The position numbers and the translations under genes were made by a program. Under the pieces are notes generated by a model. The model was given only the letters and a program-made list of their open reading frames with translations. It had not been told where the DNA came from and searched no databases. A stretch of 64,000 nt of DNA from Lepidodermella squamata (taxonomy: Eukaryota; Animalia; Gastrotricha): positions 2,666,001 to 2,730,000 of the forward strand of contig JBLDXI010000020.1 in assembly GCA_047495785.1 (NCBI GenBank), read 5' to 3'. Within the stretch, counting starts at the first letter, position 1. Each line of letters opens with the position of its first letter. This document shows, one piece after another, positions 9,794 through 39,000 of the stretch.

Positions 9794-10202
9794 CACCTTG
9801 AAATTTGTGGGCTCTTATTGATAGAGGGTGTGTTATGAAAAATGTTCGTAATGGTGACTCTTTTTGAGCAACTGGGTGAATATAGGCTGTCCTTTCATGA
9901 TTCCCTTTCAATAATATGAATAGACACATTAGTTTGTCTTCAATGTGTTATTGAGCTTTGGCGACGAACTTGGCAAGATTTTCCAGCCTTAGATACCAGG
10001 CCACAGCTTTGAGAATCAGGACGACTTTTTTCTCCCTCTCTCAAACCTCGCTCCTTTGTTTTTATTCGAATAATGGTTCCCATGCGGGGGCAATACACCT
10101 ACGCGAGAACTCACGAGAACAAAGACAGCTCTCAGCCTCAAGTAGGTGTTTACCTGTTCCTGGTTTCATTCTGCGAAATCAGACCTCATAATTTGCGGTG
10201 TA

Positions 10203-10757
10203 ATGGCTTCTTTACTTTTTAGCTTGTTTTCAACCATTTTGCTGGTCAACTCAGCATTTGGACTCATCGAAGACGATTTTACTGATGCTGCGTATTACAA
10301 TGACACCGAGAAGGTTGTTAGACTGCTTCAACAAGGCATAAAAGTCGATGCTCGCCAAAGTGATGGCTACACAGCCCTTCACTACGCCGCTATGGCTGGC
10401 AATACTGACATTGTCGCCTTGTTACTGGAAAGAGGCGCTAACATTGAAGCCCGCGATGAGGATCTCTACACGCCGTTGATGCTAGCTGCCTACTACGGAC
10501 GAGCTGAGACTGTTGGCTTTCTGTTGGACCAAAGCGCTAACATTGAAGCTAAGGATGAAGACGGCAATACTGCTTTGATTGCGGCAGCTTTTACTGGAAT
10601 GACAGATGTCGTTAAAATTTTGGTGGCCCGCGGCGCTGATATGGAAGCTAAGACAAATAAAGGCCTCACCGCTTTGGGAACTGCTTATTTCACGAACTTC
10701 TTGGAGACTGCTAAGTACTTGGAAGGCAAAGGAGCAAAACTTTCAAGCACAAAGTAA
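10203..10757 (+). CDS. Intronless ankyrin-repeat protein with N-terminal signal peptide (copy A)
   Basis: MASLLFSLFSTILLVNSAFG followed by near-consensus repeats GYTALHYAA, LYTPLMLAA, GNTALIAAA, GLTALGTAY. Confidence 0.92.
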   Translation: MASLLFSLFSTILLVNSAFGLIEDDFTDAAYYNDTEKVVRLLQQGIKVDARQSDGYTALHYAAMAGNTDIVALLLERGANIEARDEDLYTPLMLAAYYGRAETVGFLLDQSANIEAKDEDGNTALIAAAFTGMTDVVKILVARGADMEAKTNKGLTALGTAYFTNFLETAKYLEGKGAKLSSTK

Positions 10758-10956
10758 TTTATGGCCCAATGACAACCATTGATTACATCAGTTATGTAGT
10801 TATGTAGTCTGATACCAAATGCTAAATGTCGAAAGGCAACTTGCATAAATAAAGAGTATGAGTATGAGTATGAGTATAAAACAGCAAGAAAAATAATTGA
10901 CAAATTTTTAAGGTGCATGAGATACAAATTGAAGTTTTTTGCGGCTCGATCATCTT

Positions 10957-13659
10957 CTATCTGTCTCGTCTACTAGCTCCAGAAACTGAGCTCCTTTGAT
11001 CATCGTCAAGCCCTTCATCGGCCCAGACTGCCCAAAAAAGATCAATGACCTGTCCAGATTTCTTGAAAATAAAGATGATATAAGCCACATTCATTGAGAT
11101 GATGAAATTTGAATTTACCCCGACTTTAATTTGTCCCCTCGCCTTGAAATCAATCTCGTCGGCGATTGACAGTCGATGGCGGACAGCTGCTGATACGTGG
11201 GTCTTCTTCCCGAGACCAGTGGCGTGAATCAGAGCAGCAGTATGCATTGCCTCGCCAAAAATGGCCATTTGAGGGACCCGCAGTTGGAGCACGCGGGCGA
11301 AGCAAGCCCCAACGTGAATGCCAATGCGCACGTGGAAGGACTTGTTTGCGCTTTCGTCGCCGTTAACGTCGATTTCTGTAGCGAAAATCTCCTGGAACTC
11401 CAAAGCGAGGTAAACAACCTCGGCGACGTGGCTGACAGTTCTTCGTTCGCCAACACCGGCCGCAAGACCGAATCCGTCACCTTATGAGAAAGAATGGAGA
11501 GTCATTTCACTTCAACTCAATTAGAAAAATCTAACCGAAGATTTCGATTTTGCATATGTTGAACTTCATGAGACGCGATTCAATGGTTTCGTTGAACAAC
11601 GCAAGCATTTCCATAAACTCAGCGCTGTCTAGCTCCGCCATTAAATCATGAATATTTGTTATGTCCATCAACATGACGCAGGTGTCTGAGGATGAAAAAG
11701 TTTTGTTTCGCTGCATTCTTTTCAGAAATGTTTACCAATGCAATGAACCGGCGCTCCTACGTTTCCTCTCCGGATAGAATTTATCATGGATCGCGGTACG
11801 CAATCGTACATCAGCGTGAATGACTGGGTTGTTGTTAACGTGATACATAAATGTGAATTTTAAGAAAATGCTGGCGGTTATACCTTAGCTAGTTGTTCCA
11901 CGGTTTGGTAGGACCGAATGATTTGTCCCTGTATTCTCCAAGTTACCAGAACGTGGGCCCCTATTGCGAGGATGGCGATCGCTGCGGAAAATGCGAACAA
12001 AACTGCAGCTGAAAATATTGAAAAATATGTATAAAATTGTTTCCGCAAAAATGTCACTTACAGACTACTGCCTCGTCACCCCAAACCTTGGCCGCATAAC
12101 TTAGCGCCTTCTCAACCTGAGGAGTGAGAGTTGAGATAATCCAATTGATACTCGAATCCTGCGCCTGCATCACAGTGTTCCACACGTCCGAGGGTATTGT
12201 AATAAAATCTTGGATCAGAACCTGCGATAGACAGCGAATGATCCGGATGCGTTATTTTGAGTATAAATAGTGCTATACATATCGATGCCACTGCTCCACA
12301 TTTTTCATGTTATCTGAATCGGTAAGGTTTTTAATTTTCTGATATCCCTCGTCACTGGTTACTGTAACAATTCGCATGAACTCGCCGTATCTCATGTAGA
12401 AATTCAGCATATTCTGAAGGTAAAAATAATTATTATTAATAGTTTAAAATGATAGTCTTACTTGATAAATCAAGTCGTTTATTTCCACAGTTCTGTCTGT
12501 AAAAGAGGATTTGGAGGCTTTGTGGGGATTGAGGGGGTCTCTTACTTTCTGCCACAAGTTTTCGGCCGACTAGAGCGTATTTCTTGAAATTAATGTACTG
12601 AAAACATTGTGTCACCGTTTCAGAATTATGTCATGGTAAAAGATCAACAAACCGTTTGGAAACAGTAGAAAGTTGTGAGTAGCTCTCGCCAGCCAGGGAA
12701 TCGAGCTGAACGAATAGTGCTGGTTCTTACCAAGGCTGCTAAATTGTCGACTATTCCCGAATAGTAGATAATGGCATCTTCTTCCGAAGTCCCGTTAGGA
12801 GCCTTTCTCATATCTCGGTTTGCCTTCAAAGATGCGCGTAAAACGACTGCTGAAGTCAAATTCACCCGTTGCGCACTGGGCAAAGCTGACAGATCATTGG
12901 GCCAGCGACTTATCATCAACAATTTCTGTTTTCAGAGGATTTATTACTCCTTAGGGAAAATTCAGCTTCAGCTGATCATACCGAGTCAACATTCCGCATC
13001 GGTATTTGAGCCTGTGGTTGATAGCCTTGATAGAATCATCATCAAATTTCATCCATTCAAGGTTACCTTCTGCAGGAATGTTTCGTAAGGACCTCTGTTG
13101 AATCTGCAAGCAAACTCAATGAGTCGATATTAGTGAATAATCTCAGTTTTTACTCGTAGAACGGTTCCATCTCCAAGCTCATGAGGATGATGATATCGAA
13201 CAATTCGAAGATGATGCTGTTGAGGTCCTTGAAATGATTCCGAATTGAAAACATGTTGCGGAGATTCGATTAATTATCTCACCTCCAACTGCCGAGAACG
13301 TTCAATTCTCAACGTAGAAACTTGCGCATCCGTGTAAACTTGAACCATGATACCAGTAGTTGACAGAACAGCAAAAAACACAATCTATTTTCAGCCAGCA
13401 CAAATGAATTAGAGCAGATTTTTAACACTTCCCTGAGTATTACCAGGCCAATCTGTCCGTATCGGCCGATTTTGTGCTTCGGGTTGAACTGCAGCTTTTC
13501 TTGTATCCAGCCGATAGTGTAATAGAAAGGACTATCAGCGAACGTCAAGTGGGCCATAGTGTCATCGATGATGATAGTCGGCGTAGTGACACTTCCATCG
13601 TCGCCATAAGATATCTGATATCCTTCTCCCCCGACCGGAGTTACCCTTGAGCCTGGCAT
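10957..13659 (-). CDS. Membrane guanylyl cyclase-like protein, TM-NIT-like-TM-coiled coil-cyclase (copy 1), about 15 exons, catalytically degenerate
   Basis: Cyclase motifs VMLMDI, KIEIF|GDGF, VRIGIHVG, PQMAIFGEAMHTAALIHATG, RGQIKVG|KSGQVIDLFW. The region between the two TM helices has NIT-like features (ISRWP, DAIIYYSGIVDNL, GWRELLTTF, WNTVM..QDSSI). Confidence 0.82.
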
Positions 13660-15189
13660 GTTTCAACTTTAGGATAATGTTAGACTGCGAATAAAATTGC
13701 CGTCTCAGCAGATAGGTTATATATCCAAGCACGGACCTGAGGTCGCTTTTATAAGTCGGCTGAATACAAATCATCCATTATTCATTAGTAAATGAGGTAA
13801 TTATCCACAGAGAAAAATAAGCTTGCCATCAATATTTGTAGGTCACGATAAATTAATTAAAGCCTCAGTTTCGGACTGCCTTGACCAATTGCTGCTTTTA
13901 ATGCTAATTATGCACTGTCTCATCTTTCGCTATACCTGGATTCGGAGCTTATTCGATTCTTGATTAATTCGAGGCCAGTTGAAATTTCTGCACGGAGTGG
14001 CAGTGCTTATTGCATTCTTGTACTCGGCCCGTCCAAATCGCGACTCGGTCGCGAACCATCGTAATCAAAATTGGATCGCGATTAGTCTACGAAGTGCTCG
14101 AGAAATCGAATCGAATCGCACTCTACTTAACCATTTTCAAATTTACTCAGGTTTTCGGTGGTTGTTGCCTAGAAGCCTGACCACCAACGGGCGCAGATGG
14201 AGCGTTGATTATGCTATCACAGGAAACCCTGCGCTAACCTGCCCGTTACAACCCTGCATGGCGGAGATATTGATACGCTGAATTTGATGCGGCTACCAAA
14301 GATTCATTTCTTAACAACTTCCTACACTCTCCACTTCTTCCAAGTTTAAAAAGCTTTGGTTAAAGGTCCTTTACCACGTTATTTTTCAAGTTTCAAGAAA
14401 ATAGGATTCAGGTTTGTTTGTAGTCGAATCCCAGATCCAACCAATCCTTAATTAAAAATCGAGCAGAATTTAGGCAGGCATACATTCGGGCAGCATTCCG
14501 ACCCAAAAATCACCAGAATAAGCGTAAATCACTGAAATAGATCCGTAAAACTGGGCAGCATTTAGTCCACGATTCGTATAATTCTCACAAATCTGGAAAT
14601 GGTAGCGAACAGAATTGCAACGAGCTCCCTGAAATGGGGCCATTGTCATAACAGCGAGAGAATTGGGGTGGAATTCAGATATATTGTCTCAGATCTGCTT
14701 CTTTTGAATCCAAACTTACCCCTCGCCTTGACACGCTTGAGGGTGAAGAAGTCAAGCTGTCACGCGCAAGAAATCGACATTAATGAAAACAGGTCACCGA
14801 TTTCTGGGTATTCGATCCATTCGCAGAAAGAATTTTGGTGAATTTGGAGAAGCGGTTTTCAGATTATTGATCAGATTAGTGATCTACGCAACTGCGGCAG
14901 TTTTTCGAACGCATTTTTTCGCAAAACGCTGTTTAATTAAGGCGTATGCGCTTCTAGGGCTTGTCCTGAGCTAACACTATCAAGAATTATCCGCCATGCG
15001 GAAATCACCAAATTCAGGGTGATCCACACAACTTTCAATTTTTCGGATTTTATATTTTCACTTTCATAAAATACATACTTATACTATGAATTGCTACAAT
15101 TTTTTTGCAATTTTTGGTTATGAGGATGGAGTTCCTTTGGTGATAACAAGAAAAAAACCGCGACCCGAGGCGATGCACAGGTATGGCCA

Positions 15190-15660
15190 GGTAATTGCGC
15201 CCAAATTGCCCCATGGAAAAGTCATATATGGGGGCGAATTGGTCTATTGGTTTAATTAGTCTATTTAATTATGAGAACCTTTTAAGCGTCCTCCGACTAC
15301 CTAAGACAGTTAGGATGAAAGCCAGGAATATAAAAGAAATTATTTGAACATATTATGAATAAATGATAATAAATTAATAAAAAAAAAGTCAGAAAAAGCA
15401 AATAAAAATGTTTTGCTACCGGGAGTCGCCACAGACATGCGGCGCATCATAACCACTCTACCACCCAACAATCCCACACTGTAATTTTCATCATTCATTT
15501 AAAAAGATTAAGCTGCCCAATTCGCCCCAAATCGCCAGCCCGATTAGCCCCAAACCTGGGGCGAATTGAGATACATGAATTTTCGGAATCAGGACGTGTA
15601 AATATGCAATAAAATCAGGGGGTAATTTTTTTTCACTACCCAACTCGCCCCAAACAGCGG
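15190..15660. repeat. Cluster of short CCCAATTCGCCCC-type motifs in both orientations, probable DNA-transposon subterminal repeats
   Basis: GCCCAAATTGCCCCA (~15199), GGGGCGAATTG (~15231, ~15558), CCCAATTCGCCCCAAA (~15516), CCCAACTCGCCCCAAA (~15639). Confidence 0.4.
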
Positions 15661-16488
15661 TAGAATACGTTGACCAGTATGATGCCAAATTTTAGTCACT
15701 GCAATTCAGTTAGCACATAAGCAATTAGGCTCACCACCAAGCGTTACAAAAACACACCTCTTGCAGCAGCAATTACGCAACGCAAATAATTAGCGCACCG
15801 CATGAAGGGACAAGTGAGCACGAGGCGCGCGCGCGATTTGCAGCATGATTAAATAAATGCGACACGCAACTCAACCAAAGTGAAAAATATTTTTAAAAAG
15901 GTGAAGCACAAATCCCTAAAATCGAAACAAGCTAGTAAACCTGGCGTCCATGTCGCGGGTTGGGCGACAGAACGACTTGCCTAGAATACAGTATGTCCAA
16001 GAAATTCCACCCAAGTATTTTAGCCGCCATTCATTCAGAGGCAATATCTTTCCATCGGAATAATGTCTCTCGTTCACGGAACAAAATATCTACAATTATC
16101 CGAAAGACATTTCGATGCGGAAAATTGTCTAATTTATCGGAAAGTATCTTTTTTTCCGTCGGAACAACGAAGCAATAAAAAGATGGCGGTCAAGTTACAG
16201 CAATGGCTGCAGCCGGCCTATAGTCAAGCATGGCTAATTTAGCCATAGTATCCAAATTTTCAGTTTTTGAAATGCCACAGTGCCCTCCGTTTTAAATTTA
16301 ATTTAATTGGATGAAACTTGGGGAACTAGTATTACATTTAAACACGGGGAATCTTTTGATATTAATCGCCCTTATCGGATACCACATATGGCTGATCCAG
16401 CGTGCGAAGTAGGATCCTCGAACCAGGGGGTATTTTCAGGCCTAAATTTTACCACCAAAGGGTCCCCCGTGTGGTTTTTTCGGGTGTG

Positions 16489-16833
16489 ACTTTTTTCATC
16501 CGACCAATGTCTTTTTTTATCCGACCAATGTCTTATTTCATCCGACAGCCAAAAATGTGACTAAAATCATCCGACATGAAAATATCGATTTTCTCGATTT
16601 TCCCAAGTTCGATTTTTCCGTAGGGGCAGACCCCTTTCATGCACCCTATTTTGGCCCCTGAACCGGCGGAATTTTATGGTGAAAGTTTCATCGCGATCTG
16701 AGTTGTCACTTTTTTACTGTGATTTTTTGAAAATATGAAAAAGCAAGTCGGCTGGTTTTAGTCACATTTTTGGCTGTCGGATGAAATAAGACATTGGTCG
16801 GATAAAAAAAGACATTGGTCGGATGAAAAAAGT
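16489..16833. mobile_element. MITE/foldback-like element with ~87 bp inverted arms made of ~21 bp TCCGACCAATGTC units
   Basis: 16489-16575 is the near-perfect reverse complement of 16747-16833. No coding capacity. Confidence 0.75.
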
Positions 16834-18068
16834 TTTCCCCGTTTTTTCGGGGGTTTCCCACTTGGGCCTTGCGAACTGGGGTTACGATACCCCTCATTCC
16901 CCAGCGTACTTCGCGCCCTGGGCTGATCAGTCGCTTACGACCCGAGCTTTAGATCTTCTTGTACTCACAAGTTTTTTGACAACATTTGACTACCTGATGT
17001 TTGATAGTCATTCGAAAGAGCACCTTCAAACATCAAATTAGCTAAAGATAGTTCGTGTTTATTAATTTATCGCCTTTTACGCGTGAAATGTGGGTAAATG
17101 TGGGTAAGGGTGAATGTGGGATCTTGGTTTCAATTTTTTCATTTTCCGTCGCTTAAAAGACATTTTCAGAGGATATTCAGCAGCTTTGATGGAAAGTTCG
17201 CGACTTTGCTTGAGGTTGTGCAGCTGGTGACGTGGAAGGCTGATGTGACCCATTCCGCCGTTATAAAGACATTTTCCTACCGAGCGAGGAAAAACTCCTG
17301 TCGCATGCGTTGGCTTAGGCCCACGAGCTAAGATTAGTCGCCATCGATCTGCGGCATCATTCCTTTCCTCCAGCGGTTAGAAAAATGTTTCAAGCCCGGT
17401 CGTCGCCGAAGATTGGTTGGAGCTTTGGAGTATGAGAAATCGAACAGGCAGGGACAACTAGGTCTGTTGAGTAACCTGAGTTCGGCGGAAAAGGCAGCTG
17501 TATTCGAGGAGGTAGTTGTGGGTTACAAGTAATACAAGATGCGAAGCGCGGGTGGTGTCAAAATCGCGGCGGATGACCTATTGTTCCTATTGGTCGTGTG
17601 ACCCGAAGCTAAGTTTCCAGTTATCGAAGCTGAAGATTAGGCAGTGAAAGCTGCGCCCCTGTTCGTGGTGACAAGAGGCGTGGTTCATTGTTCCATCATC
17701 GAAAAGACATTATTCGAGGAGAAAGATATTGAGAGTGGAAAATAAGTAATTTCGCATGAAAAGAGATATTTTTTTATTCCGATAGAATCAGGATATCAAT
17801 TTTCACGCGAATGAGTTGAATGTGGAAATAATAAACAAAAATGCGCTTAATCAAATTCAATTTCGAAAATTTGATTGACGGGCGGAAAATGTGGCTGTAA
17901 ATGTGGCCTGGCCGGGTACCGTGGTTCTAGAATTTCTCACCAAAGGCCTCATAGTTAGCCCGTGGACAATTCTGTATGAAATTTCCGTATTTTACGAATT
18001 ATCAGGCGGGACCGAAAAATAGGGCAGAGCCGGAATAAAGGGCAGAGCGTAATGGCCATCCTATTATT

Positions 18069-18120
18069 TACTTGGTAGGCAAAAGAGCAAAACTTTCAAG
18101 CACGCAGTAATTTATGGTCT
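18069..18120 (+). pseudogene. 3' remnant of ankyrin gene copy A marking the left edge of the tandem duplication
   Basis: TACTTGGTAGGCAAAAGAGCAAAACTTTCAAGCACGCAGTAATTTATGG matches 10716-10765 (YLEGKGAKLSSTK*). Confidence 0.8.
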
Positions 18121-18236
18121 AATAGCACTCATTGACAACATCATTTCAAAGGATAACACAGGAAGAAAAATAATTGACACATTTTTAAGTTGCATTTGGG
18201 TTAAAAATTGAAGTATTTTTGCGGCTCGATCTTCTT

Positions 18237-20948
18237 CTATCTGTCTCGTCTACTAGCTCCAGAAACTGAGCTCCTTTGATCATCGTCAAGCCCTTCATCA
18301 GCCCATACTGCCCAGAAAAGATCAATGACCTGTCCAGATTTCTTGAAAATAAAGATGATATAAGCCACATTCACTGAGATGATGAAATTTGAATTTACTC
18401 CGACTTTAATTTGTCCCCTCGCCTTGAAATCGATCTCGTCAGCGATTGACAGTCGATGGCGGACAGCTGCTGATACGTGGGTCTTCTTCCCAAGACCAGT
18501 GGCGTGAATCAGAGCTGCGATGTGCATTGCCTCGCCGAAAATGGCCATTTGAGGGACCCGAAGGTTTAGCACGCGGGCGAAGCAAGATCCAACATGTATG
18601 CCAATGCGCACGTGGAAGGACTTGTTCGCGCTTGCGTCGCCGTTGACGTCGATTTCTGTCGCGAAAATCTCCTGGAACTCCAACGCGAGGTAAACAACCT
18701 CGGCGACGTGGCTGACAGTTCTTCGTTCGCCAACACCGGCCGCAAGACCGAATCCGTCACCTTATGAGAAAGAGTGAAGACTTGTTTCATTAAATCCATC
18801 AGAAATAAACTTACCGAAGATTTCAATTTTGCATATGTTGAACTTCATGAGACGCGATTCAATGGTTTCGTTGAACAACGCAAGCATTTCCATAAACTCG
18901 GCGCTATCTAGCTCCGCCATTAAATCATGAATATTGGTTACGTCCATCAACATGACGCAAGTATCTGAAGGGAATAGTCAAATTTGCGTTTATCTTGATA
19001 GGAATTAGGAATTAGATTGATCTCACCGATGCAATGTATGGGCGCTCCTATATTGCCCCTTCTGATTGTATTTATCATTGAGCGTGGCACGCAGTCGTAC
19101 ATCAGCGTGAATGACTATTGACATGACTCGGTAATATTGAAATTAGTTCCGTTTTCTATATTAATACCTTTGCTAGCTGTTCCACTGTGCCGTAAGAGTT
19201 GATTATTTGCCCCTGTATTCTCCAAGTTACCAAAACATGGGCGCCTATCGCTAGAATCGCTATTGTTGCGGAAAAGGCGAACAAAATGGCCGCTGAAATG
19301 GGGCAATATTTCAATCAAAATGAGCGGCTGTGGAACTTCCACTCACAGACAACAGCTTGGTCACTCCAAACTTTTGAAGCATAGGTTAACGCTCTAGCAA
19401 CACGTGGGGTTAACGTTGAAATAATCCAATTTATGCTGGAATCTTGTGCCACCATAACAGCACTCCATTCTTCTCCACTCATCGACGTGAAGTCTTGATT
19501 CAGAACCTGTTGGTTATTGAGAGAAACACAAAATAATTGCATTTCAAGCTAAAAGCTCGTGCTTTACATATCGATGCATCTGCTCCACATTTTTCATGTT
19601 ATCCGAATCGGTCAGGTTTTTGATTTTCTGATATCCCTCGTCACTGGTTACTGTGACGATTCGCATGAACTCGCCGTATCTCATGTAGTAATTCAGCATA
19701 TTCTGGAAGAAAAATGTTGACAACAATCCACCACAATCGATAATCTTACTTGATAAATCAGATCGTTTATTTCCACACTTCTATCTGTAAAAGCATAACA
19801 ACGGAGGCTTAGCGGTGATTGGATGTGAGCCACTTACTCTCTGCTGCCAGCTTTCGGCCGACAAGAGAATATTTCTTGAAGTTTATGTACTGAAAGCATG
19901 GTAAATGTTATTGGTATGGTTGAAGGCAATAGCATAAACGAACTGTTTGAAAACAGAAGAATGTCGTAAGCAGCTCTCGCCAGCCAGGGAATCGAGCTGA
20001 ACGAACCGTGCTGGTTCTTACCAAGGCTGCTAAATTGTCAACTATTCCCGAATAGTAGATAATGGCATCTTCTTCCGAAGTCCCGTTAGGAGCCTTTCTC
20101 ATATCTCGATTTGCCTTCAACGATGCGCGTAGAACAACTGCCGATGTTAAATTCACCCGTTGTGCGCTGGGCAAAGCCGACAGATCATTGGGCCAGCGAC
20201 TTATCATCAACAATTTCTGTTTTCATTCGGAATATTTTTCATTCGGGATTTAATTCAGCTAATCAAACCGAGTCAACATTTCTCATCGGGATTTGAGCCT
20301 GTGGTTGATAGCCTTGATAGAATCATTAATACTAAATTTCATCCATTTATGGTTACCTTCTGCAGGAAAGTTTCGTATGGACCTCTGTTGAATCTATAAG
20401 CAAACTCAATGAGTCGATATTAGTGAATAACTTCAGTTTTTACTCGTAGAAAGGTTCCATCTCCAAGCTCATGAGGATTATGATATCGAACAATTCGAAG
20501 ATGATGCTGTTTAGGTCCTTGAAATGATTTCCGAATTAAAAAAACATGACGAAGCTTAGATTTGTTATATCTCACCTCCAACTGTTGTGAACGTTCGATT
20601 CGCAACGTAGAAACTTGCGCATCTGTGTAAACTTGAACCATAACACCAGTCGTCGACAGAATAGCAAAAAACAGTATCTGATTTTAGCACGCAGGAATTA
20701 ATGATTGCGACATTTCAGCATTTCAATATTACCAAGCCAATCTGAGCGTATCGACCAACTTTCCGTTTTGGATTGAATTGCAGCTTTTCTTGTATCCAAC
20801 CGATAGTGTAATAGAAAGGACTCTCAGCGAACGTCAAGCGGGACATAGTGTCATCGATGATGATAGTGGGAGTAGTGACACTTCCATCGTCACTATATGA
20901 TATCTGATATCCTTCTCCTCCGATCGGTGTTACCCTTGACCCTGGCAT
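18237..20948 (-). CDS. Membrane guanylyl cyclase-like NIT-domain protein (copy 2, tandem paralog)
   Basis: Same exon structure as 10957-13659, with near-identical ORFs (MPGSRVTP..., EDAIIYYSGIVDNL, VRIGIHVG...MAIFGEAMHIAALIHATG). Differences I checked are mostly synonymous or conservative. Confidence 0.82.
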
Positions 20949-21768
20949 GTTTCGAGCAAAAACTTTTAAAGACTGCGAAATGAAAATGTGCAAAAGCGAT
21001 CTCAGGGGAGGGATTATATAGCCATGTTCGGACCTGAGGTCGTTTTTTAAGCCCGGTAATTAATTCGGCTTAATAAAAATGATTTACTATTCATTAGTAA
21101 ATGAGCTAGGAGCTAGTTATCCACGAAGAAAATTAACCTTGTCGCCGATATTATTGTAGCCGGTGATTGACTATAAAGCCTCAGATTCGAATCGCTCTGA
21201 CCAATTACTGCCCTTTTAATGCTAATTGGGCCGGGCCCATCCTATCTTTCGCAATACCTGCATGCGGCGCTTATTTCATTTGTAATTAATTCGTGTGATC
21301 CGTGGTCATTTTTGCACGGAATAGCAGTGCTTATACGGAGAGCTTTGCATTTTTCGATATTGATCCGTTTCTTGTCCGCTTCTAGAATCTGAGGTTAAGC
21401 CAGATCTTCTGGGAAACACAAAACAACTGGGGTATCTCAACTGCAGGAATAAACAACTATCAAAATAAAGGATCAACATGCTTTGATCACTTGATTGGAT
21501 CCGCTACGCAGTAAGAAAATATCGCCAAGCGCTCATTTGAATTCATAAAAGGGGTGAGACAAGAGATTGAGTCTTGAGGTAAACATATTATTGTACTGAT
21601 TTCAAGACTTATTCTGGGAAGAAAAAGGAATTTTATTGCTAAATATTCATCATCGCATAATTTTAAAGCTTATGAGAAATGTCCTGTAGCGATGAGCTAC
21701 GACAACACCGGTAATGTTTTCAGGTATAAAAAAATTCTAGCAAAAATCTGCAAGCTTGCCAATGACCA

Positions 21769-22332
21769 TTATTTGCCTGTTGGGACTCTTGCTCCTTTGG
21801 AGACGAGGAAGTTGACGACGTTCATATAATTTGCAAAGTAAGCTGCGCCTAAAGCTGTCGAGCCGTCTTTAGATTTCGCTTCGATATTGGCTCCACGAGT
21901 TATCAGCAGCGCAACAGTATCTTTCATCCCTGCGAATGCTGCATTCATGAGTGGAGTTGATCCTGCTTTATCACCCGCTTCGATTTTAGCATTCCTATCA
22001 AGCAGTAGGGCCACCGTATCAGTGCGGCCCATGAATGCCGCATTGTGCAGTGGGGTATTCATGTTAAGGTCACGTGACTCGATGTTTGCACCTTTGTCGA
22101 GCAGCATCGCAATAATTTCGACATTTCCAGCTGCTGCAGCGGCATGCAAGGCTGTGTTGCCTTCCTCAGAACGACTTTCGACATTAATGCCATCGCCGAG
22201 CATCCTTGAAACACCTTCCGTGTCATTGTGATAAGCAGCTCCGACAAATTCGTCCTCCTTAGTAGCGGAGGTAAAGTTTACGAGCAAACATAAGATAGAA
22301 ACAAGAAAGAACGAAAAAGCAAGCCGAGCCAT
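21769..22332 (-). CDS. Intronless ankyrin-repeat protein with signal peptide (copy B)
   Basis: MARLAFSFFLVSILCLLVNFTSA-TKEDEFVGAAYHNDTE, then GNTALHAAA, MNTPLHNAA, GSTPLMNAA, GSTALGAAY. Colinear with copy A. Confidence 0.92.
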   Translation of the reverse strand: MARLAFSFFLVSILCLLVNFTSATKEDEFVGAAYHNDTEGVSRMLGDGINVESRSEEGNTALHAAAAAGNVEIIAMLLDKGANIESRDLNMNTPLHNAAFMGRTDTVALLLDRNAKIEAGDKAGSTPLMNAAFAGMKDTVALLITRGANIEAKSKDGSTALGAAYFANYMNVVNFLVSKGARVPTGK

Positions 22333-23018
22333 TTTACGTACAGCAATTCTAGGTTTTGAGAAGAAATGAAAAGTGCTAGTCAACCCAGGCGAATTCACAC
22401 AGTTATAAACCCTAAGCCTAATCGGTTTATCTATTGAATATCAACTGTTTACGTTCAAGCTCAAGGTAAAACGAGGTGAACACGAATTTTTCAGTGATGT
22501 GGCGTGATCTTTCACCACGTCGTCTTTAATATGTAATCCAGGTAATCCTTTTAGTTTGCCTAATCATTTTTGTATAAAAATAAGGCCGTCTTTAAGCTTT
22601 CTCGGTCGTCGCTATTTTAGCCAAAATGACCTCATAAATCAGTACATTTTCAGATGAAAAAAGGAATCGAGGGTTGAGGATTTCCAAATATTTCAATTTA
22701 ACCCACTTATTGAATAGTCCAAGCGCAGTTTATCCTTCAGTTAAAGCGACTGGGCTTCGACACTCTCCTGTTTCATTTGTCAATTCTGTCGATTCGCCGG
22801 ATCTCTGGCAAACCCTCTTCGCTCTTTCGCTCACAAAAAAGCAGGTATACCTATAAGTCACGCGATACACTATGGAGTAATAGCGTAAAAAGTCGTTTTT
22901 TCATTCCCGTGAGTCAAAATGAGCAATAAAGAATAGGAAACTTGGGAAATTACCTGCGAAAATGTTATAATTTTTCGCCTGCTACTAGCTCACATTTCCT
23001 GATGCGGTTGAGTAAAGA

Positions 23019-24140: not shown

Positions 24141-26525
24141 TCAGTGTTGGCTAAGTACGGAAAAAGCTGTTACTAGAATTGGATAGCTGTAAATTGCTGC
24201 GAAAATCGATGAACTCAAGCTAAGAACTGTTAGTAATTGTGGTAGTTCCTCACTCAAAATGATCATTAGCAGAATTGCAGAGAGTAGCGTTCCACTTATG
24301 CCTGCAACGATAAAAGCTTCTTGCCGCAGATTCAAAACATCAAAATTTTGAACTTTAGAGGTGGTCAGAAGATAGATAGACATCCCTGTAGCAGCTAGTT
24401 TCAAAAACAAAATTGCCATCAATGCACCAAGCCATGCGGATGTGAAATTGGAACTGCAATTTAATTTTACGATACTGAGATAGATATCGTCAAAAGCATT
24501 GTATTCCGAAGTCAGATCGGCCTGGCAGTGAATATGGTCGACTGTAAGCCAAATGATAATAAGAATGATGCTTAAAGCAGTAATCGATCCCGTCAACTTG
24601 AGGCTGTCGAATTCATTGACGGGAGCCACGCTTATGATTTGGTGACTTTGTTGTTGACATATTGACGGCAAGCTGGTTTGAGAGTACATGCGTTGATGGC
24701 GTCGAGCAACGCGTTTTGCTTTTTGTCTACCATTGCTCATAGCCTTCTTCGTTCCGCGTGCATGCAGGAAAAGCTGGGCAAACTGACAGCTGACCAGAAA
24801 CGAGAAGCCAAATCCAAACAGGCATATAACGCTGTTCATCATCGGAGTTTCTTGCTCGATAGTATCCAGGAAGGATCCAATACTAGCCGCTAGAATTGCG
24901 GACAAAGTGATTGCAGTGCAAGCCAGCCACCTTAACATCATAGAGATCGGCTTGTTCTTAGTTTTAAGCAAAGCGATTCCACTTGTAATAGGGGTGAAAG
25001 CGGCCGAAATCCCACACACTATGAAAACACTCAACGGCATTCGGTTGTTCGAAACTCTGTACAGAGGTGAATCTTTCGGGGGTTCCTTATCTAACTTTCG
25101 CCAGGGGAGTTCGTCGATAAGCTTGATACTTGTATAATCATTATTGTCAAATCTTCCACTGGTATTAGGCAACTGAAAGACCTCCATGACGTTTCGAATT
25201 CCTCCCGGATTGAAGTAGTGAGAGAATGCAATGAAGTCAGTGGCCAACTCGCCCGTACTACTATATTGAATCTTTCCAACTCTTAGACCATCGAATTCTA
25301 GAGATTTAGCAGACGAATTAATGTGTCCTATCGCTTCTCTCGGGAAACTCCAATAATCTTCCAATTTCCTTCCTATTCGAGCCAACTGATAAAATGAGGC
25401 ATTCAAAGTTAGAGCTGCAGCGTAGGCGACATCGTGGCACTGAAACCGGTTCCCGTAATCGACCCCTCTCGAGAAATTAGAAATCGAATCAAACCATTTC
25501 TCAAATTGGTTCGCATCGTAATCGAATTGCCGCAGTTTTATTGTTTTATTCAGCGGAATCTGGCGATTGCCGACACCAAAGCTGTACTCATACTGCTCTA
25601 GGATGATAGATTTCGTGCAATTCGGACCGATTTCTTCAGGCAGGGTAGTTGGGTCGGTAAGAACAGCGCCGGTAAGGAAGAAAACGTATCGATTCCCGGT
25701 AACTCCGACGTGATAAGCTGCGCAGAGAAATCGCCTAGCTACGTCGATTTGACTAACCCACATAACTATAATTCTAGCATCGCTTTCTTTCAGAGCCTTT
25801 GCTTGAGCTGTATCTCTAACCTCAGCAATAGCATCATACCAAACTACGGTCACGTTATGACGGGAAGAGACCTTTTCCAAGGCTTCAGCTGCCATCATAT
25901 CTTGCGTGTTGTAGACATAACTTGCAATAGCAATCCTTCGCCATTTCCCAATGTGACGAATGAAGTGTAACTGGGCGTGGACTTGGGCTAACGATGTCGC
26001 CTTTATCAAGTATAAATTCGGGTATTTAACACGATCTGTGAGTGCCATGCCAGCACAAGCCGCTGCAAAGGCGACCATGCCAAGATGGTGAAGTACCGGC
26101 CCTAAGCCTTGACACCCGTTGGAGAAAAATCCAGCGATCATGACCGGGGCATAAATTGTCGAACTATCGTTGGAATCAGTCATAGCTTCGCGCCAAAATT
26201 TGATTGTCTCCTGAACCGAGAACAAGCCATTGTTCCTTTCGTCGGCAACTGCAAGCTCAAGCGTGTGGTTCGGCAGGAAGTCTGGCCGATTGCTAATTGC
26301 GTTGAACGCTGCCTCGGCGCCGTATCGGCATTCAAGACCAGTGCGGGGCGGGTTTCCAGTTTGGGGCAGAAGCATCAAAACTTTGATCTTCGCCGTGAGG
26401 GAATACTGCACCAAAGAAGTAACCAGAAATAGAACCAGTTGTGGCTTCTTCATATCTCGAAAGGTATTCATGATTTCGCTGAAGTTCTGTCCTTGACGAA
26501 ATGAGATATCTTGCTCCCTATTCAT
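24141..26525 (-). CDS. Intronless divergent GABA-B-like class C GPCR (Venus flytrap domain plus 7TM); start may be an internal Met (MKKPQLVL)
   Basis: AISNRPDFLPNHTLEL, LTDRVKYPNLY, KWRRIAI, LKESDARII, FLCAAYHVGVTGNRYVFF, PPKD linker with no cysteine-rich domain, seven hydrophobic helices. Confidence 0.88.
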   Translation of the reverse strand: MNREQDISFRQGQNFSEIMNTFRDMKKPQLVLFLVTSLVQYSLTAKIKVLMLLPQTGNPPRTGLECRYGAEAAFNAISNRPDFLPNHTLELAVADERNNGLFSVQETIKFWREAMTDSNDSSTIYAPVMIAGFFSNGCQGLGPVLHHLGMVAFAAACAGMALTDRVKYPNLYLIKATSLAQVHAQLHFIRHIGKWRRIAIASYVYNTQDMMAAEALEKVSSRHNVTVVWYDAIAEVRDTAQAKALKESDARIIVMWVSQIDVARRFLCAAYHVGVTGNRYVFFLTGAVLTDPTTLPEEIGPNCTKSIILEQYEYSFGVGNRQIPLNKTIKLRQFDYDANQFEKWFDSISNFSRGVDYGNRFQCHDVAYAAALTLNASFYQLARIGRKLEDYWSFPREAIGHINSSAKSLEFDGLRVGKIQYSSTGELATDFIAFSHYFNPGGIRNVMEVFQLPNTSGRFDNNDYTSIKLIDELPWRKLDKEPPKDSPLYRVSNNRMPLSVFIVCGISAAFTPITSGIALLKTKNKPISMMLRWLACTAITLSAILAASIGSFLDTIEQETPMMNSVICLFGFGFSFLVSCQFAQLFLHARGTKKAMSNGRQKAKRVARRHQRMYSQTSLPSICQQQSHQIISVAPVNEFDSLKLTGSITALSIILIIIWLTVDHIHCQADLTSEYNAFDDIYLSIVKLNCSSNFTSAWLGALMAILFLKLAATGMSIYLLTTSKVQNFDVLNLRQEAFIVAGISGTLLSAILLMIILSEELPQLLTVLSLSSSIFAAIYSYPILVTAFSVLSQH

Positions 26526-27842: not shown

Positions 27843-30224
27843 TCAAGAATTCGAACCACCTTTCATAGGGTTACACAATATTGCGACAGTTGTTAACGAG
27901 AAAAACAGCTCGCAAGATGCAAGTGTAAATAATCGAACACATGGGTTACTCAAGTTAGACACGACAGCTATCAAAAGAATGGTGCCACAAAATAGAGAAA
28001 TAGCATTGAATGATGCGAAGCGCAAACTTTTACAGGTAAACTTATGACAAGATGGAACCTCTGATTTTCCAGCCGCATAAGCTGTTAATCCTGCAGAAAG
28101 CAGAAGAACGCCCTCTACAGCCAAAATCGAAGCTAGAAAATGGGTTTCAAAGTGCGATGAGCAATTTATGGTCTCCGTATGATAATAGCTATCAGAAATT
28201 TCGTCAAAAGTAATGCTAGATATCGTAGTGAAAATGTTTGGAGAATCTAAAAGAATCCAGCTTAACGAAATTGAGAAAGGCGCGAGAATCGCGCAGATCA
28301 GCCCTGATACAAGATATCGCTTCTCTTTCAGTTTAAACTTGAATTCCATATCAGCAAGAGCTGAGTCTTTCATTCCAGAATGGCTTACTGAAGCTGTTGA
28401 GCTTCGCCTCGAGCTAAATGTGTAAGTATCAAGTAGGACAGTTGAATATCGTCTAAAGGAAACAGATTGGCGAGAAGTGTAGTTGAAGTAAGATAACCGC
28501 GGTTTGTTGGCTTTATAAAACTTGAGAAAACGTGAATATGAGATCATTTTGGAAGAAATAATTGCGACTATAATCCCCAACCAAATGGTGTGCAAGAAAG
28601 GTCGAAGCCAACATTCCAACTCGGGCAGATAATCATACCCAGCGACGAGAAAAACTGAGGAAAAATTCACCGCAATACAAGAAGCGACCACCGCGACTTT
28701 GCATGTCAGAGTGAACATTAAATTTCCAGTTGAATTTGCCACTCGAATTTTCTCGTTAATCATCAAAATGAGTTGCAGAATCGATATCGAAACTGCTATA
28801 GTGGAGAAGGTTATGATAGCAGCTTTGCCACATTGAGCAACCCTCCGCTCAATGTTGGACAGATCTTTTGGAGGTAATTTCGACTTGGTTCTCCAAATAG
28901 GCTTCTCAATTACTGACATTCCAAACTGGAGTAAATCAATCTCCTGATACTCGGTCCAGTTTTGAAGTAAAGGCATACGGTACAAATAACGAGGTTTATT
29001 GTCGACCAATTGCGCCAGGTAGAGATTATCGTCCACCTGGCCTCGGGAGTTGAACCTTAATCGACCTATTCGAGTTCCAATAAAATCTGTAGACGAAGCG
29101 GTTGAGTTCACTACCTTATGAACTAATTCTGGATACTGTTGGAAATCAGCCAAAGTCTTGCCGTGGCTGGTTTGTAGAATCTCTTGACTTTTATTCAGAG
29201 TCAAAATCGCCGCCATCATCGCATCGTGGCACAAAAATCTGAATTCGTTATCAGAAGGTTCCGTGTAATTCAGCAATTGCCGGTACTTCTCCTCGAAAAA
29301 ACTTGGCTCGTATCCAAAATTTGTCTGCTCATAAATTCGAGGCGGTAAGTTTCCATAGAAACTGCTCATTTGTTGCGTTTCCAACATTTGCTTCGAGCAC
29401 GATTTAGGAACCGGCAGTGCGCCGAAATTTTCGGTTGAAAAAGTGCACAGATTCGAGACAAAGATGAAGGAATACATTGGAGCTGTCATTCCGACAAGAT
29501 GAGCGAAACAAATGAATTTTAAACAGCTGGCAAGTGGGATCAGCATAACTGCGATAACTCTAGCCCCGCTGGCTTTGATTGCCAAAGCTGTATCGATGGT
29601 TATATCGAATTCACTGGCGTAAAGAAGTACGTCCACGCCATTCGCCGTTGAAACCGAATGCAATTTTTCGGCAAGCAAATATTCGTTGGCGTTATTCGCA
29701 TTGGTTACAATGGCGATTTGGCGCCATTTGCCAACTTGTGCGATAATCGCAAAAATTCCCAGAACAGCATTACCAGCCGGAGTTTGAACCGAGTAAAGTG
29801 TTGAGAAAAGGTTCCGTTTCGCAAGGATGAAAGGTCCAGCGCACTGTTGCGAGAACAAGGTTAGCTTCATATTCCGAAGGGCTAAAGCTGAATATTGGCA
29901 TGAAACTGTCGGTCCTATTAAGACTGGCGAAAGAGTCGAATTTCCTGTTAGAACGAAGTTATCTATGACTTTAACTATGCTAGGTAGGGCTTTCACTGCC
30001 CCAGGTCCTTCATCCACGATGTTTTGCACGATTTTGAAGCCTGGCAAGATATCAGAGCGGGAATTTGCTTGATCTATGACGAATTGCATGGCAGCTCGAC
30101 AGCCTGGCATGTCCAACTTACCATCTTTGAATGGTAGGGAAGCTAGAATTATCAGTTGGCTTGTCTTGTCCGCGGCAGAAATTCGCAAATGCAGAAGAAT
30201 TATGAAGTAAAAAATCGGGGTCAT
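27843..30224 (-). CDS. Intronless divergent GABA-B-like class C GPCR
   Basis: Signal peptide, ANSRSDILPGFKI, KWRQIAIV, IKASGARVI, CHDA, PPKD linker, 7 TM helices ending LCNPMK. Confidence 0.88.
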   Translation of the reverse strand: MTPIFYFIILLHLRISAADKTSQLIILASLPFKDGKLDMPGCRAAMQFVIDQANSRSDILPGFKIVQNIVDEGPGAVKALPSIVKVIDNFVLTGNSTLSPVLIGPTVSCQYSALALRNMKLTLFSQQCAGPFILAKRNLFSTLYSVQTPAGNAVLGIFAIIAQVGKWRQIAIVTNANNANEYLLAEKLHSVSTANGVDVLLYASEFDITIDTALAIKASGARVIAVMLIPLASCLKFICFAHLVGMTAPMYSFIFVSNLCTFSTENFGALPVPKSCSKQMLETQQMSSFYGNLPPRIYEQTNFGYEPSFFEEKYRQLLNYTEPSDNEFRFLCHDAMMAAILTLNKSQEILQTSHGKTLADFQQYPELVHKVVNSTASSTDFIGTRIGRLRFNSRGQVDDNLYLAQLVDNKPRYLYRMPLLQNWTEYQEIDLLQFGMSVIEKPIWRTKSKLPPKDLSNIERRVAQCGKAAIITFSTIAVSISILQLILMINEKIRVANSTGNLMFTLTCKVAVVASCIAVNFSSVFLVAGYDYLPELECWLRPFLHTIWLGIIVAIISSKMISYSRFLKFYKANKPRLSYFNYTSRQSVSFRRYSTVLLDTYTFSSRRSSTASVSHSGMKDSALADMEFKFKLKEKRYLVSGLICAILAPFSISLSWILLDSPNIFTTISSITFDEISDSYYHTETINCSSHFETHFLASILAVEGVLLLSAGLTAYAAGKSEVPSCHKFTCKSLRFASFNAISLFCGTILLIAVVSNLSNPCVRLFTLASCELFFSLTTVAILCNPMKGGSNS

Positions 30225-36003: not shown

Positions 36004-39000
36004 CTAAAAATGGCTATCAGTGGCGTGGTACGATAACCGCACAGCGGCTGGTTCTGACGAGTCGTGGCCGTTTGAAGGGAGGCCTATCACCGCAGAAGTT
36101 GGCAATCTTAGCGCGGCCATCGCCCGGCGGGGCCACGACCGTGTCCTACCCCGTCCCCCACCTCCGCCGCCTCCGTTGTTCGCCGCCATTTCGTGATGAT
36201 TCATCACCATACCGCCGTTCAACGCACAGCCAATCTCGTCGAGGGTACACGGGCCTAGATCGCCGTTGTGATGGCCGAGATGCCGCTCCCACGACACCTC
36301 CAACTGCCGCTCGTTGTGATGCTCCGACAACTTCATCTCCTTCGCCAACTGCCCGACATTCAACGTCAACGGCGGGATTAGGCTATGCCCGCCCGGGGTC
36401 GGGAAGCCTTCCTCACTGGTCGAAGGGCTCGAGCCAATCGCTGGCGGCCGGTCAAGCGTGCCGTCCAGGTAGAACGAGTAGTCTTTAATCCTATGCCGGC
36501 GGCAGAGAACGAACAGAGCCAGCATGACTAAGCAGCCGATGACGAAAGCCAGGACGCAACCCATCACGATGATATAGACGTAGTCGCCACTTGTCGATTG
36601 GTCCAGGTCGGATTTAGTCGGGTCCATGCTCGAGTTAACAGCGATCGGAATGCCCTGAGCCCTCGCCGCGATTTCGTTGAAATCGTGCCCGGTCGATAGG
36701 CTGAAGGTCGAAGTCGCGGGGAGGATGGTCGTAGTCGTAGTCACTGGCTCAGTCTCCTGGGCCGGGTATTCCGGCTCCGGGGCCGCGACTGGTTTCTCAG
36801 TTTCCGGCTCGGGTGTCGTGGTAGTCGTCGTAGTAGTGCTAGTCGTAGTCGTTGTCACCTCCTCCGTCGTGGTAGACGTGGACGTAGTGGTGGTACTAGT
36901 CGTCGGGGAGGTCCTCGGGGTCTCGGAACAGAACACCCTAACGTCATTATCATGGCCCATGCAGTAAGGTGTCTTATCAGTCGCCCATCCGTTATTGACG
37001 CAGCTAGACAACGACGCAGCCCCCTCGCCGCATTTAACATCAGACAACCAAACCGTCAAATTCGAGGTGTCATCTCTGTGAGCTGAGTCGACCTCAGAAT
37101 TCGCGACACTCCACCCGTAGGCGAATCCTAACTGCCGGCAAACTGCTAGGCTTAGGTGATTCCGCTGATCTACGGTTGCTAGGCCCTTATCGCAAATCGT
37201 GCCCTCAACATCGTCGACGTTGATCACAACCAGCCCAGACCGGGTTAGCCGGACTGAGAACAGCGTCTGGTAGCAGAGAACGTTCAGCATCGAGCAGTTA
37301 TTAGGCCGGCGTTGATACGCGACCGAGCAGTGTTCGATATGGTGCTCGGAGAACAGACACGCAATCGAATCGAGCAGGACCGGGAAGTCGGGTTTCCGCG
37401 GGCCCGGGTAAGCAAACCCGCCCGAGTAGCCCTCCTCCTTACAATACGTCTGAGCAACCGTGAACGAGCCGAAATCGTCCGAGAAGCAAACACCGCCTTG
37501 GACTGTATTATACAACTTCGCCTCAAGTCGGCCGGAGTGAAGATTTTTCGCCGCTGGGATCAACGCGTTACCATCCTGGTCGAAATGGTGTTTATGGACA
37601 TGGTACTGAATCTTCTCCCGAGTTACTGACGACTTGTTGTAGCACATAACCTCGGCGAAATTTTCCTGCCCGCAATTCTGGACTAATTGGACGTTACATT
37701 GCTGGATCGCCCGTTCAGTTCCGGTGCATTGCGTCACGACTACGCCATTCATATTTTCACCCTTCGAGTTCGGGGCGATGGTAGTAGTCGCCGGGCGAGA
37801 GTTACCGCCCAACCCGCAGCACATATCAACGCCGCCGTTGAAGCTGAGTTGCCGGCAAATGACGTCAGCCGCCTTCGGGCCCCAGCCCATTTCCTCAGAA
37901 TTCTCAGAATTCGCTCGAATCGGCGCGCAAATAGTGTGCCAGTTGCCGGTCTGCGGTATGTACATCTCCAACTGGCCGTAGCCCAACTGGGCGCCAGGGC
38001 CAACGAGACGGACAGACGGGTCGCGGCAGACAACGGCCGCGTCCCGGCGCGATGCCGCCGTGCAAGTCGCGTCCAGGCCGAACAACGCGCATTCAGCCAG
38101 GGTGTCTTCATTGCCGGTACACGACAACGAGCCGACGAACTGCGGCACCAACCCAGCCGCGCTTTCCGACGCCGAGAAGTGGGCAGAGTCGGCTAGGAAG
38201 CCGGTCGGGTAGCCCAACTGCCGGCAAATCACATCGGCGGCGTTGGCGTCCAATCCGGTCGCGCATACCGTCGACCAGGTTCGCGAGTCGGCGCTCAGTT
38301 CGACAACGCCCGACGAGAACCCGTTACCGCCCGTCAACCGGATCGACCAGAGCAGACCCGGCGGGAAGCGGATGACCGAGGCGGTGGTTGTCGAGGTCGA
38401 TCCTGGGGTACTTGTAGTCGTCGTGGTTGTAGTAGAACTACTAGTCGTCGAGGTTGATTCCGTTGTTGTAGTAGTCGGGGTGGTAGTCGATGTTGTAGTC
38501 GGCTCGGTAGTGGTAGTCGTTGTCGACTCAGTTGTAGTCGTAGTCGGTACTGTAGTAGTCGTGGTAGTAGTCGATTCCGTAGTCGTCGACGTAGTCTCAG
38601 GCGTCGTGGTCGTGGTCGTTGTAGTCGAGGTCGAAGTCGAATCTTCCGTAGTCGGGCTAGCCGGGGATGAAACAGGCTGCGACGAGAAGGTTGGCTTATC
38701 ATCCGTGAAATCCGACCTATCCTGAGTCCTGCTGCGATGGCTGTCCCTAGCAACCGGTACCGTAGTGCCCTTACTCAAATTCGAGACTGAAACCTCGTCC
38801 GACGTCGACATGGTAGTAGTCGTAGTCGTACTCGAGGTCGATGTAACCTCGAAACACTGAATCGCACCTGGGATGCCGTTGACATTCACCGTTTTGTACG
38901 CAACGACCTGATCAGCGATTTTGATGACACAGGTCGATGAGTCATCACACGTGTAAGTGTCAACCCAAAACATGAAAGGCTGGCCGTTAACCGCCTTCAA

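Follow-up and report, generated by a model that had tools for sequence, protein, structure and literature searches.

A tandem pair of divergent NIT-type receptor cyclases in a gastrotrich keeps one side of the class III catalytic site

Positions 10957-20948 of a 64,000-nucleotide stretch of the genome of the gastrotrich Lepidodermella squamata (the whole of which we call the window) correspond exactly to two tandem paralogous genes on the minus strand, copy A and copy B, which encode membrane proteins with a class III nucleotide cyclase domain. They constitute a very divergent and previously unannotated branch of the animal NIT-domain receptor guanylyl cyclases (NIT-GCs), in which the cyclase domain has kept the metal-binding side of the catalytic site and lost the other. 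Because only half of the active site is kept, this domain probably either depends on a second subunit or has ceased to produce cyclic nucleotide. Judged from the residues present, we give roughly even odds (a probability of about 0.5) that A and B act as the metal-donating subunits of an asymmetric cyclase dimer formed with a partner subunit. The two genes are as follows.

10957-13659, minus strand: copy A gene, 14 exons, 637 amino acids, intact
Copy A exons, minus strand: 13659-13444, 13384-13283, 13227-13154, 13103-13067, 12925-12653, 12597-12546, 12496-12462, 12413-12279, 12221-12062, 12008-11884, 11823-11736, 11685-11536, 11480-11119, 11061-10957
18237-20948, minus strand: copy B gene, 14 exons, 637 amino acids, intact
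Copy B exons, minus strand: 20948-20733, 20677-20576, 20517-20444, 20393-20357, 20216-19944, 19889-19838, 19784-19750, 19702-19568, 19506-19347, 19292-19168, 19114-19027, 18964-18815, 18760-18399, 18341-18237

Both proteins run from an N-terminus through a first transmembrane helix (TM1), a 270-residue ectodomain, a second transmembrane helix (TM2) and a 55-residue helical linker to the cyclase domain, and both lack a kinase-homology domain. Hydropathy places TM1 at residues 70-88 and TM2 at residues 359-377, with the ectodomain between them. The basic residues before TM1 and after TM2 fit a predicted topology in which both termini are inside the cell; in copy A the motif KHKIGR, just before TM1, fits a cytoplasmic N-terminus. 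The ectodomain of copy A contains the motifs RWP, NGTS..YYSGIV, PGWRELL and VWNTVM together with four N-x-S/T sequons, of which three are conserved in L005g, one of two homologues from metagenome contigs (L005g and L003g, described below), and is predicted to be glycosylatable. In the 55 residues that separate TM2 from the cyclase core, LMYDCVPRSM..RRG of copy A stands opposite LLYQ-LP.sVA..LK.G of the NIT-GCs. The phase-0 intron within TM1 is also present in L003g, and the phase-1 intron within TM2 is common to copy A, L005g and L003g. The parts of copy A are listed here.

13337-13452, minus strand: TM1, residues 70-88, Kyte-Doolittle hydropathy 2.14 in a 19-residue window, split by intron 1
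12072-13336, minus strand: ectodomain, residues about 90-358, exons 2-9, a divergent NIT-type domain
11962-12071, minus strand: TM2, residues 359-377, hydropathy 2.65, spanning intron 9 (phase 1, in a Ser codon)
11737-11961, minus strand: juxtamembrane helix and linker, residues 378-432, collinear with the NIT-GC signalling helix
10957-11685, minus strand: class III cyclase domain and tail, exons 12-14, Pfam PF00211 E 3.9e-14

In class III cyclases each catalytic site needs a pair of Asp residues from one subunit and an Asn, an Arg and a Lys from the other. Pfam Guanylate_cyc (PF00211) recognizes the large cyclase exon (E 3.9e-14) and the exon before it (E 0.0077), and the best match of the domain in the Protein Data Bank (PDB) is human GC-C (8FX4, E 6.8e-9). 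We read the catalytic positions in an alignment with 227 cyclase domains, with which a HMMER alignment to GC-C 8FX4 agrees. At the eight key positions A and B read DEDQAHLG, whereas canonical guanylyl cyclases read DEDRCNRK, the complete set being found in 99 of 122 NIT-GCs and in 63 other matches. Kept in A and B are the first metal-binding Asp (MDI, D440), the Glu (KIE, E480) and the second metal-binding Asp (FGD, D484). The other five positions are changed: Arg to Gln, Cys to Ala, Asn to His, Arg to Leu, and the Lys of KGKG to Gly. These losses include the Asn and Arg of the transition state, the Lys that serves the triphosphate and the Cys that takes part in base recognition. The canonical PRYCLFGDTVNTASRMES is replaced by PQMAIFGEAMH(T/I)AALIHA in both copies.

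11665-11663, minus strand: copy A D440
11545-11543, minus strand: copy A E480
11478-11476, minus strand: copy A D484
11271-11269, minus strand: copy A Gln553, immediately before the degenerate motif
11221-11268, minus strand: copy A degenerate motif MAIFGEAMHTAALIHA, standing for YCLFGDTVNTASRMES in the cyclase alignments
Minus strand: copy A Ala555, at the Cys position
11244-11242, minus strand: copy A His562, at the Asn position
11232-11230, minus strand: copy A Leu566, at the Arg position
18944-18942, minus strand: copy B D440
18758-18756, minus strand: copy B D484
18501-18548, minus strand: copy B degenerate motif MAIFGEAMHIAALIHA, from the same alignments

An earlier interpretation of this stretch from its letters alone (the sequence-only reading) had proposed a layout of transmembrane helix, helical domain, transmembrane helix, coiled coil and cyclase, and a cyclase domain of C1 or alpha type in which both metal-binding Asp residues are kept and Cys, Asn and Arg are lost. 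Hydropathy, the Pfam match and the linker alignment bear out the layout, with the genes refined to 14 exons, and the 227-domain and GC-C alignments bear out the residues in both copies. The guanine-specifying Glu, which it had also taken as kept, is present in A and B (E480) but is not a feature of the wider family, being Phe or Gln in the relatives.

These relatives were reached through the large cyclase exon. A HMMER search of 1.84 billion cluster representatives with this exon returned nothing below E 1e-30, and its best database matches are about 41-42% identical. The highest-identity matches over most of the exon, P0002 and P0003, are fragments of open reading frames (ORFs) on eukaryotic contigs in ENA metagenome assemblies, and the contigs carry the full homologues L005g and L003g. 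The ENA assemblies that bear on the family are ERZ23486787, ERZ27333047 and ERZ27332993. L005g (632 amino acids, 8 exons) is 38% identical to copy A over its full length; L003g (1,041 amino acids, with one splice junction of its gene model approximate) appears to carry a Cys-rich N-terminal extension and is 28% identical to copy A. This extension (L003:2231-3592), of about 450 residues and apparently cytoplasmic, has repeated CHC.P.DC.C.C..C motifs and is absent from A, B and L005g. P0002 and P0003 were the only family members recovered from 5.8 billion clusters; none was found in JGI metagenomes, and an ESM Atlas search with a 59-residue exon gave no meaningful match. The family alignment comprises A, B, L005g and L003g, which represent three independent lineages.

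Across these four members both metal-binding Asp residues are invariant and the Arg position is Leu, and the Asn position reads His, His, Glu and Lys in A, B, L005g and L003g. In place of SRMES all four carry LIH(A/G). The alignment of the cyclase exon has just 19 invariant columns, the second Asp and the LIH motif among them, and the first Asp, in the preceding exon, is invariant too. L005g and L003g therefore have the same C1/alpha-type arrangement as A and B. Because it is common to relatives that are only 28-38% identical, this half-site state is shown by the family alignment to be old, conserved and ancestral to the family.

The closest cyclase domains to those of the family are animal guanylyl cyclases, NIT-GCs among them; the nearest named ones are animal genome records (nematode, mollusc, tardigrade, hemichordate, nemertean and a frog assembly). 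In a cyclase-domain tree A, B, L005g and L003g group together (100*), and the very long stem of their clade attaches in a poorly resolved region holding NIT-GCs and other animal membrane guanylyl cyclases; the nearest rows are P0014 and P0044 (NIT-GC). NIT-GCs were first recognized in 2020. They are found in a wide range of invertebrate phyla, and one of them has been shown to make cyclic GMP when given a nitric oxide (NO) donor (PMC7400543; 10.1101/2023.08.02.551600); the cell assay used for Platynereis NIT-GC1 was a COS-7/Green cGull assay (10.1101/2023.08.02.551600). The closest known systems to A and B are the NIT-GCs of Trichoplax (PMC7400543), NIT-GC1 and NIT-GC2 of Platynereis (bioRxiv 10.1101/2023.08.02.551600) and Saccoglossus XP_002742255.1 (P0044). 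A and B resemble them in having a cytoplasmic N-terminus, a transmembrane helix, an ectodomain, a second transmembrane helix, a short helix and a cyclase domain with no kinase-homology domain. They are also alike in the length of the ectodomain (270 residues, against 265-286 in the reference NIT-GCs) and in profile-level kinship. The last, phase-0 intron, at the KGKG position, is shared with the Holothuria and Haliotis NIT-GC genes and is the only intron that they have in common with the window genes. By contrast, the Holothuria and Haliotis genes have the NIT domain in one large exon, where A and B have 14 small exons. The A/B cyclase domain is only about 25-30% identical to those of NIT-GCs, Pfam NIT is undetectable in A and B, the Arg of VERALG is replaced, and DEDQAHLG stands against the full DEDRCNRK of most NIT-GCs. 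Partial catalytic loss already occurs in a few ordinary NIT-GCs (for example DEDRCHSK and DEDRCNLK). The novelty lies in the subfamily, which goes unseen by Pfam NIT, is absent from annotated proteomes, occurs here as a tandem pair and has the one-sided site fixed.

Half-site cyclase subunits are well known. The alpha subunit of soluble guanylyl cyclase (sGC; PDB 3UVJ, 6JT0) and the C1 domain of the membrane adenylyl cyclases (AC5, PDB 8SL3) have, like A and B, kept the Asp pair and lost Asn and Arg, and in alignment AC5 C1 also has Gln at the position of the PRY Arg, as A and B do. A and B differ from both in being membrane receptors with an ectodomain of their own, and from sGC alpha in that the latter keeps the DIVGFT phosphate loop, which is changed in A and B. 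A precedent for a receptor-type cyclase with a split single site is ODR-1/DAF-11 of Caenorhabditis elegans, a receptor guanylyl cyclase that works as an obligate heterodimer, its one site being made up of contributions from both monomers (PMC5225109). These are single-pass proteins with a kinase-homology domain and an ANF-type ectodomain and belong to a family separate from A and B.

A homodimer of A or of B, or an A-B heterodimer, would have two sites that both lack Asn, Arg and Lys, and a homodimer should be nearly inactive. As homodimer sites lack these residues, an asymmetric dimer is the most likely working form. In such a dimer A or B would contribute the two Asp residues, and Asn, Arg, Lys and base recognition would come from another cyclase subunit, either canonical or C2/beta-like. 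Such a pairing would leave a single catalytic site, which the ectodomain would tune through the helix that follows TM2; the other, pseudo-symmetric site would be lined by the LIHA motif specific to the family. Five observations weigh against this proposal. The 64-kb window contains no other cyclase, and hence no candidate partner. The cyclase stem in the tree measures about 4.4 substitutions per site, as expected were catalytic constraint relaxed. The position of the base-specifying Glu reads Glu, Glu, Phe and Gln in A, B, L005g and L003g. The phosphate loop after the first Asp is altered, the canonical DIVGFT having become DITNIH in A, DVTNIH in B, DVTNIS in L005g and DIVNVG in L003g. Finally, the only public sequencing run that contains the locus (X1) is of DNA, not RNA.

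The loop, the very long branch and the variable Glu, together with the loss of five of the eight key residues, also speak for the strongest alternative, that A and B are non-catalytic pseudo-cyclase receptors. Their cyclase domain would then make no cyclic nucleotide; it would be a ligand-controlled module for dimerization or scaffolding, or would join active cyclases as a dominant-negative or modulatory partner. The new, invariant LIH(A/G) motif in place of SRMES suggests a re-purposed pocket. Set against this, both metal-binding Asp residues have remained invariant among members that share only 28-38% identity. The purifying selection on the cyclase domain (dN/dS, or omega, 0.058 between A and B) is compatible with either possibility. 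We regard the non-catalytic alternative as a serious contender at odds well short of even. A fuller version of it is tentative and somewhat doubtful: that A and B belong to a lineage-specific expanded family of NIT-derived, two-transmembrane pseudo-cyclase chemoreceptors, in which the cyclase domain would be a non-enzymatic module with a re-purposed LIH pocket and the ligands would be something other than nitrate or nitrite.

Whether the ectodomain is NIT-derived is less plain from single sequences than from the family. The sequence-only reading had taken it for a NIT domain. Pfam NIT (PF08376), queried with single exons, matches none of those in A, B, L005g and L003g, even with the E threshold relaxed to 10. 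A hidden Markov model (HMM) and an alignment of the NIT domain only were built from 122 NIT-GCs with the transmembrane helices excluded. The window ectodomains score 5.3 (A) and 7.3 bits (B) with this HMM, against up to 7.8 for shuffles, whereas L005g scores 21.8 and L003g 14.7 bits, against at most 6.6 for shuffles (300 each). When the profile of all four ectodomains is compared with the NIT-only alignment in hhalign, the match covers 177 columns with a probability of 91.3% (E 9.3e-7, score 47.8); the controls reach 15.0 for the reversed profile, at most 18.3 for 24 column shuffles and at most 22.7 for 10 block shuffles. With A and B alone, the hhalign match is weak (P 0.04), and for the ectodomain of our first gene model neither NIT HMMs nor a home-made semi-global alignment with a position-specific scoring matrix rose above shuffles. 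The motifs WP, N.T..E..l.(F/Y)YS.I, W..L and W...M are collinear with those of NIT-GCs. These sequence profiles lead us to class the ectodomain as a NIT-GC-type domain that has diverged strongly, the support being transitive, through the relatives; the NIT assignment thus stands at the level of the family profile and of L005g and L003g, but not for Pfam NIT or for the A and B ectodomains taken alone.

The opposing possibility is that the ectodomain is another helical sensor, its likeness to NIT-GCs being convergent or architectural only. The silence of Pfam NIT, the shuffle-level scores of A and B and the tree, which does not put the family inside the NIT-GC clade, are in its favour. The scores of L005g and L003g, the margin of the hhalign match over its controls and the collinear motifs are difficult to reconcile with it, and we consider it very unlikely. 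The presumed ultimate fold of the ectodomain is that of the bacterial NIT domain (PF08376) of NasR (PDB 4AKK), two four-helix bundles, as cited in PMC7400543, although it is not directly matched in sequence.

NIT domains have two conserved arginines, in LQxER and ERAxG, at the interface of the two helix bundles. The second (VERALG) lies inside the hhalign match and aligns to Ala242 of the window proteins (KYALVG); it is replaced in L005g and L003g too. The first falls just beyond the match, and the extrapolated place holds no Arg. The erosion of the ligand motifs that the sequence-only reading had noted can thus be confirmed for the second Arg, while the first is outside the aligned part. In this respect A and B differ from bacterial NIT domains, whose proposed ligand-binding Arg they do not conserve; the second ER is also missing from many arthropod-type NIT-GCs. 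Because at least the second NIT arginine is replaced, the ligand of the A/B ectodomain is probably not nitrate or nitrite.

A further alternative concerns the catalytic site again: A and B could be self-sufficient homodimeric cyclases in which non-canonical residues do the work, with His562, for instance, substituting for Asn. The two copies do have both Asp residues and the Glu, and some atypical class III cyclases tolerate substitutions at Asn/Arg-type positions. The replacement at the Asn position, however, varies among the members, the Arg position is Leu in all of them, the Lys is Gly in A and B, and no conserved substitute side chain is visible, which makes such an enzyme very improbable.

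The integrity of the two genes depends on how their exons are modelled. An initial 13-exon model, with products of 609/610 residues, contained an in-frame TGA in copy B and was ruled out by the metagenome homologues. Compared with these, it had overlooked a 74-nucleotide exon (..SLEMEPFY); the following exon is just 37 nucleotides long and in a different frame (..NRGPYETFLQK), and exon 5 begins upstream (KLLMISRWP) and extends to ..FYCFQT. The homologues, by revealing these missed and reframed exons, removed the false stop: in the revised 14-exon models, which they guided, A and B are both intact ORFs and the old TGA falls in intron 4. Six of the seven introns of each homologue match those of copy A in position and phase. 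In copy A the introns are 48-60 nucleotides long with the exception of intron 4 (141 nucleotides), and GT-AG borders are kept at 13 of 13 introns in both copies. A reading of the TGA as selenocysteine was dropped, as no SECIS element was found at the Rfam gathering threshold and the revised model places the codon in an intron.

12926-13066, minus strand: intron 4 of copy A, which retains the relic of an exon that was once longer, in a different frame (AEGNLEWMKFDDD..)
20217-20356, minus strand: intron 4 of copy B, with the equivalent relic, which carries the TGA at 20283-20285

The relic in intron 4 (AEGNLEWMKFDDD..) is homologous to AHAQTAMREVDT of L005g. Between A and B it is 0.84 identical, with many replacement changes, a stop codon and a 3-nucleotide indel, whereas the flanking exons are 0.93-0.96 identical. 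As it is a relic of an exon extension in a shifted frame, it points to an old frame change, common to A and B and located at the end of exon 4, that a new donor site, GTAACC, apparently bypassed. In L003g the corresponding junction is irregular too, with no in-frame GT donor. The X1 contigs span the introns and show no joints, and they have no alternative letter at the former TGA site of copy B. A comparison with the assembly over the 3.1 kb of 18100-21200 shows five single-letter differences and one inserted A in these contigs. They are fragmented into short stretches of two different depths, a pattern to be expected from a heterozygous sample or a second haplotype.

The A and B proteins are 92.3% identical (49 of 637 residues differ), and the genes lie within a duplicated unit of about 3.2 kb (10873-14010 and 18150-21334) that is 81% identical. 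Over the whole gene dN/dS is 0.085 at a dS of 0.49, a sign of purifying selection. A and B are thus selectively maintained, intact paralogues. That one or both are decaying pseudogenes, as the TGA of the first model, the shared frame change relative to the relatives and the DNA-only public run might suggest, is extremely unlikely given the intact homologue-guided ORFs with the TGA inside an intron, this dN/dS and the complete set of GT-AG introns in both copies. The divergence between A and B (11119-12221 against 18399-19506) is uneven: exons 9-11 are 0.67-0.81 identical, with a dS of about 1.5, and exon 13 with intron 13 is 0.94-0.98 identical. Because the identity is mosaic along the gene, this pattern suggests gene conversion over the 3' part.

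The window is eukaryotic in style, with GT-AG introns of about 50-60 nucleotides, and contains the following further features.

10146-10757, plus strand: intronless ankyrin-only ORF with a hydrophobic N-terminus, flanking the cyclase pair
16489-16578 and 16744-16833: a 90-nucleotide inverted repeat, 96.7% identical, with arms 165 nucleotides apart, in the 4.6-kb spacer between A and B
21769-22398, minus strand: intronless ankyrin-only ORF with a hydrophobic N-terminus, flanking the cyclase pair
24141-26525, minus strand; 27843-30224, minus strand; 57480-59765, plus strand: three intronless ANF_receptor ORFs of 761-794 amino acids
26955-27036, minus strand: a tRNA gene of 82 nucleotides, the sole Rfam match in the window
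36004-43636, minus strand: a GC-rich block (57% GC, against about 42% elsewhere) with two SRCR-rich ORFs of 1,615 and 566 amino acids

The order of the ankyrin and cyclase genes (ankyrin to the right, A and B to the left, second ankyrin to the left) is hence not that of a duplicated two-gene cassette. Ankyrin genes also adjoin the homologous cyclase gene on metagenome contigs (L003:451-1641, L004:195-4528). The inverted repeat could be a small foldback element. An ESM Atlas search likened the ANF_receptor ORF at 24141-26525 to class C G-protein-coupled receptors; a word-indexed search of 5.8 billion clusters found no homologue of it at E 1e-10.

These genes carry a practical lesson, in that a naive exon model led to a false pseudogene call that only homologue-guided remodelling removed. 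Among about 15 billion public proteins none exceeds about 42% identity to the best-conserved exon of the branch to which they belong, a mark of its great divergence; the branch has nevertheless held a one-sided, C1/alpha-type active site through this long divergence. On either interpretation of that site, defined residues and constructs are available for testing. If A and B pair with a complementary subunit, they would represent another independent origin of asymmetric cyclase dimers, beside sGC, the membrane adenylyl cyclases and ODR-1/DAF-11, the asymmetry in this case having arisen in a two-transmembrane sensor receptor. If they do not, they would be a conserved family of pseudo-cyclase receptors; and were these chemoreceptors, they would form a new receptor class and extend the NIT-GC lineage to an animal group in which annotation has missed it.

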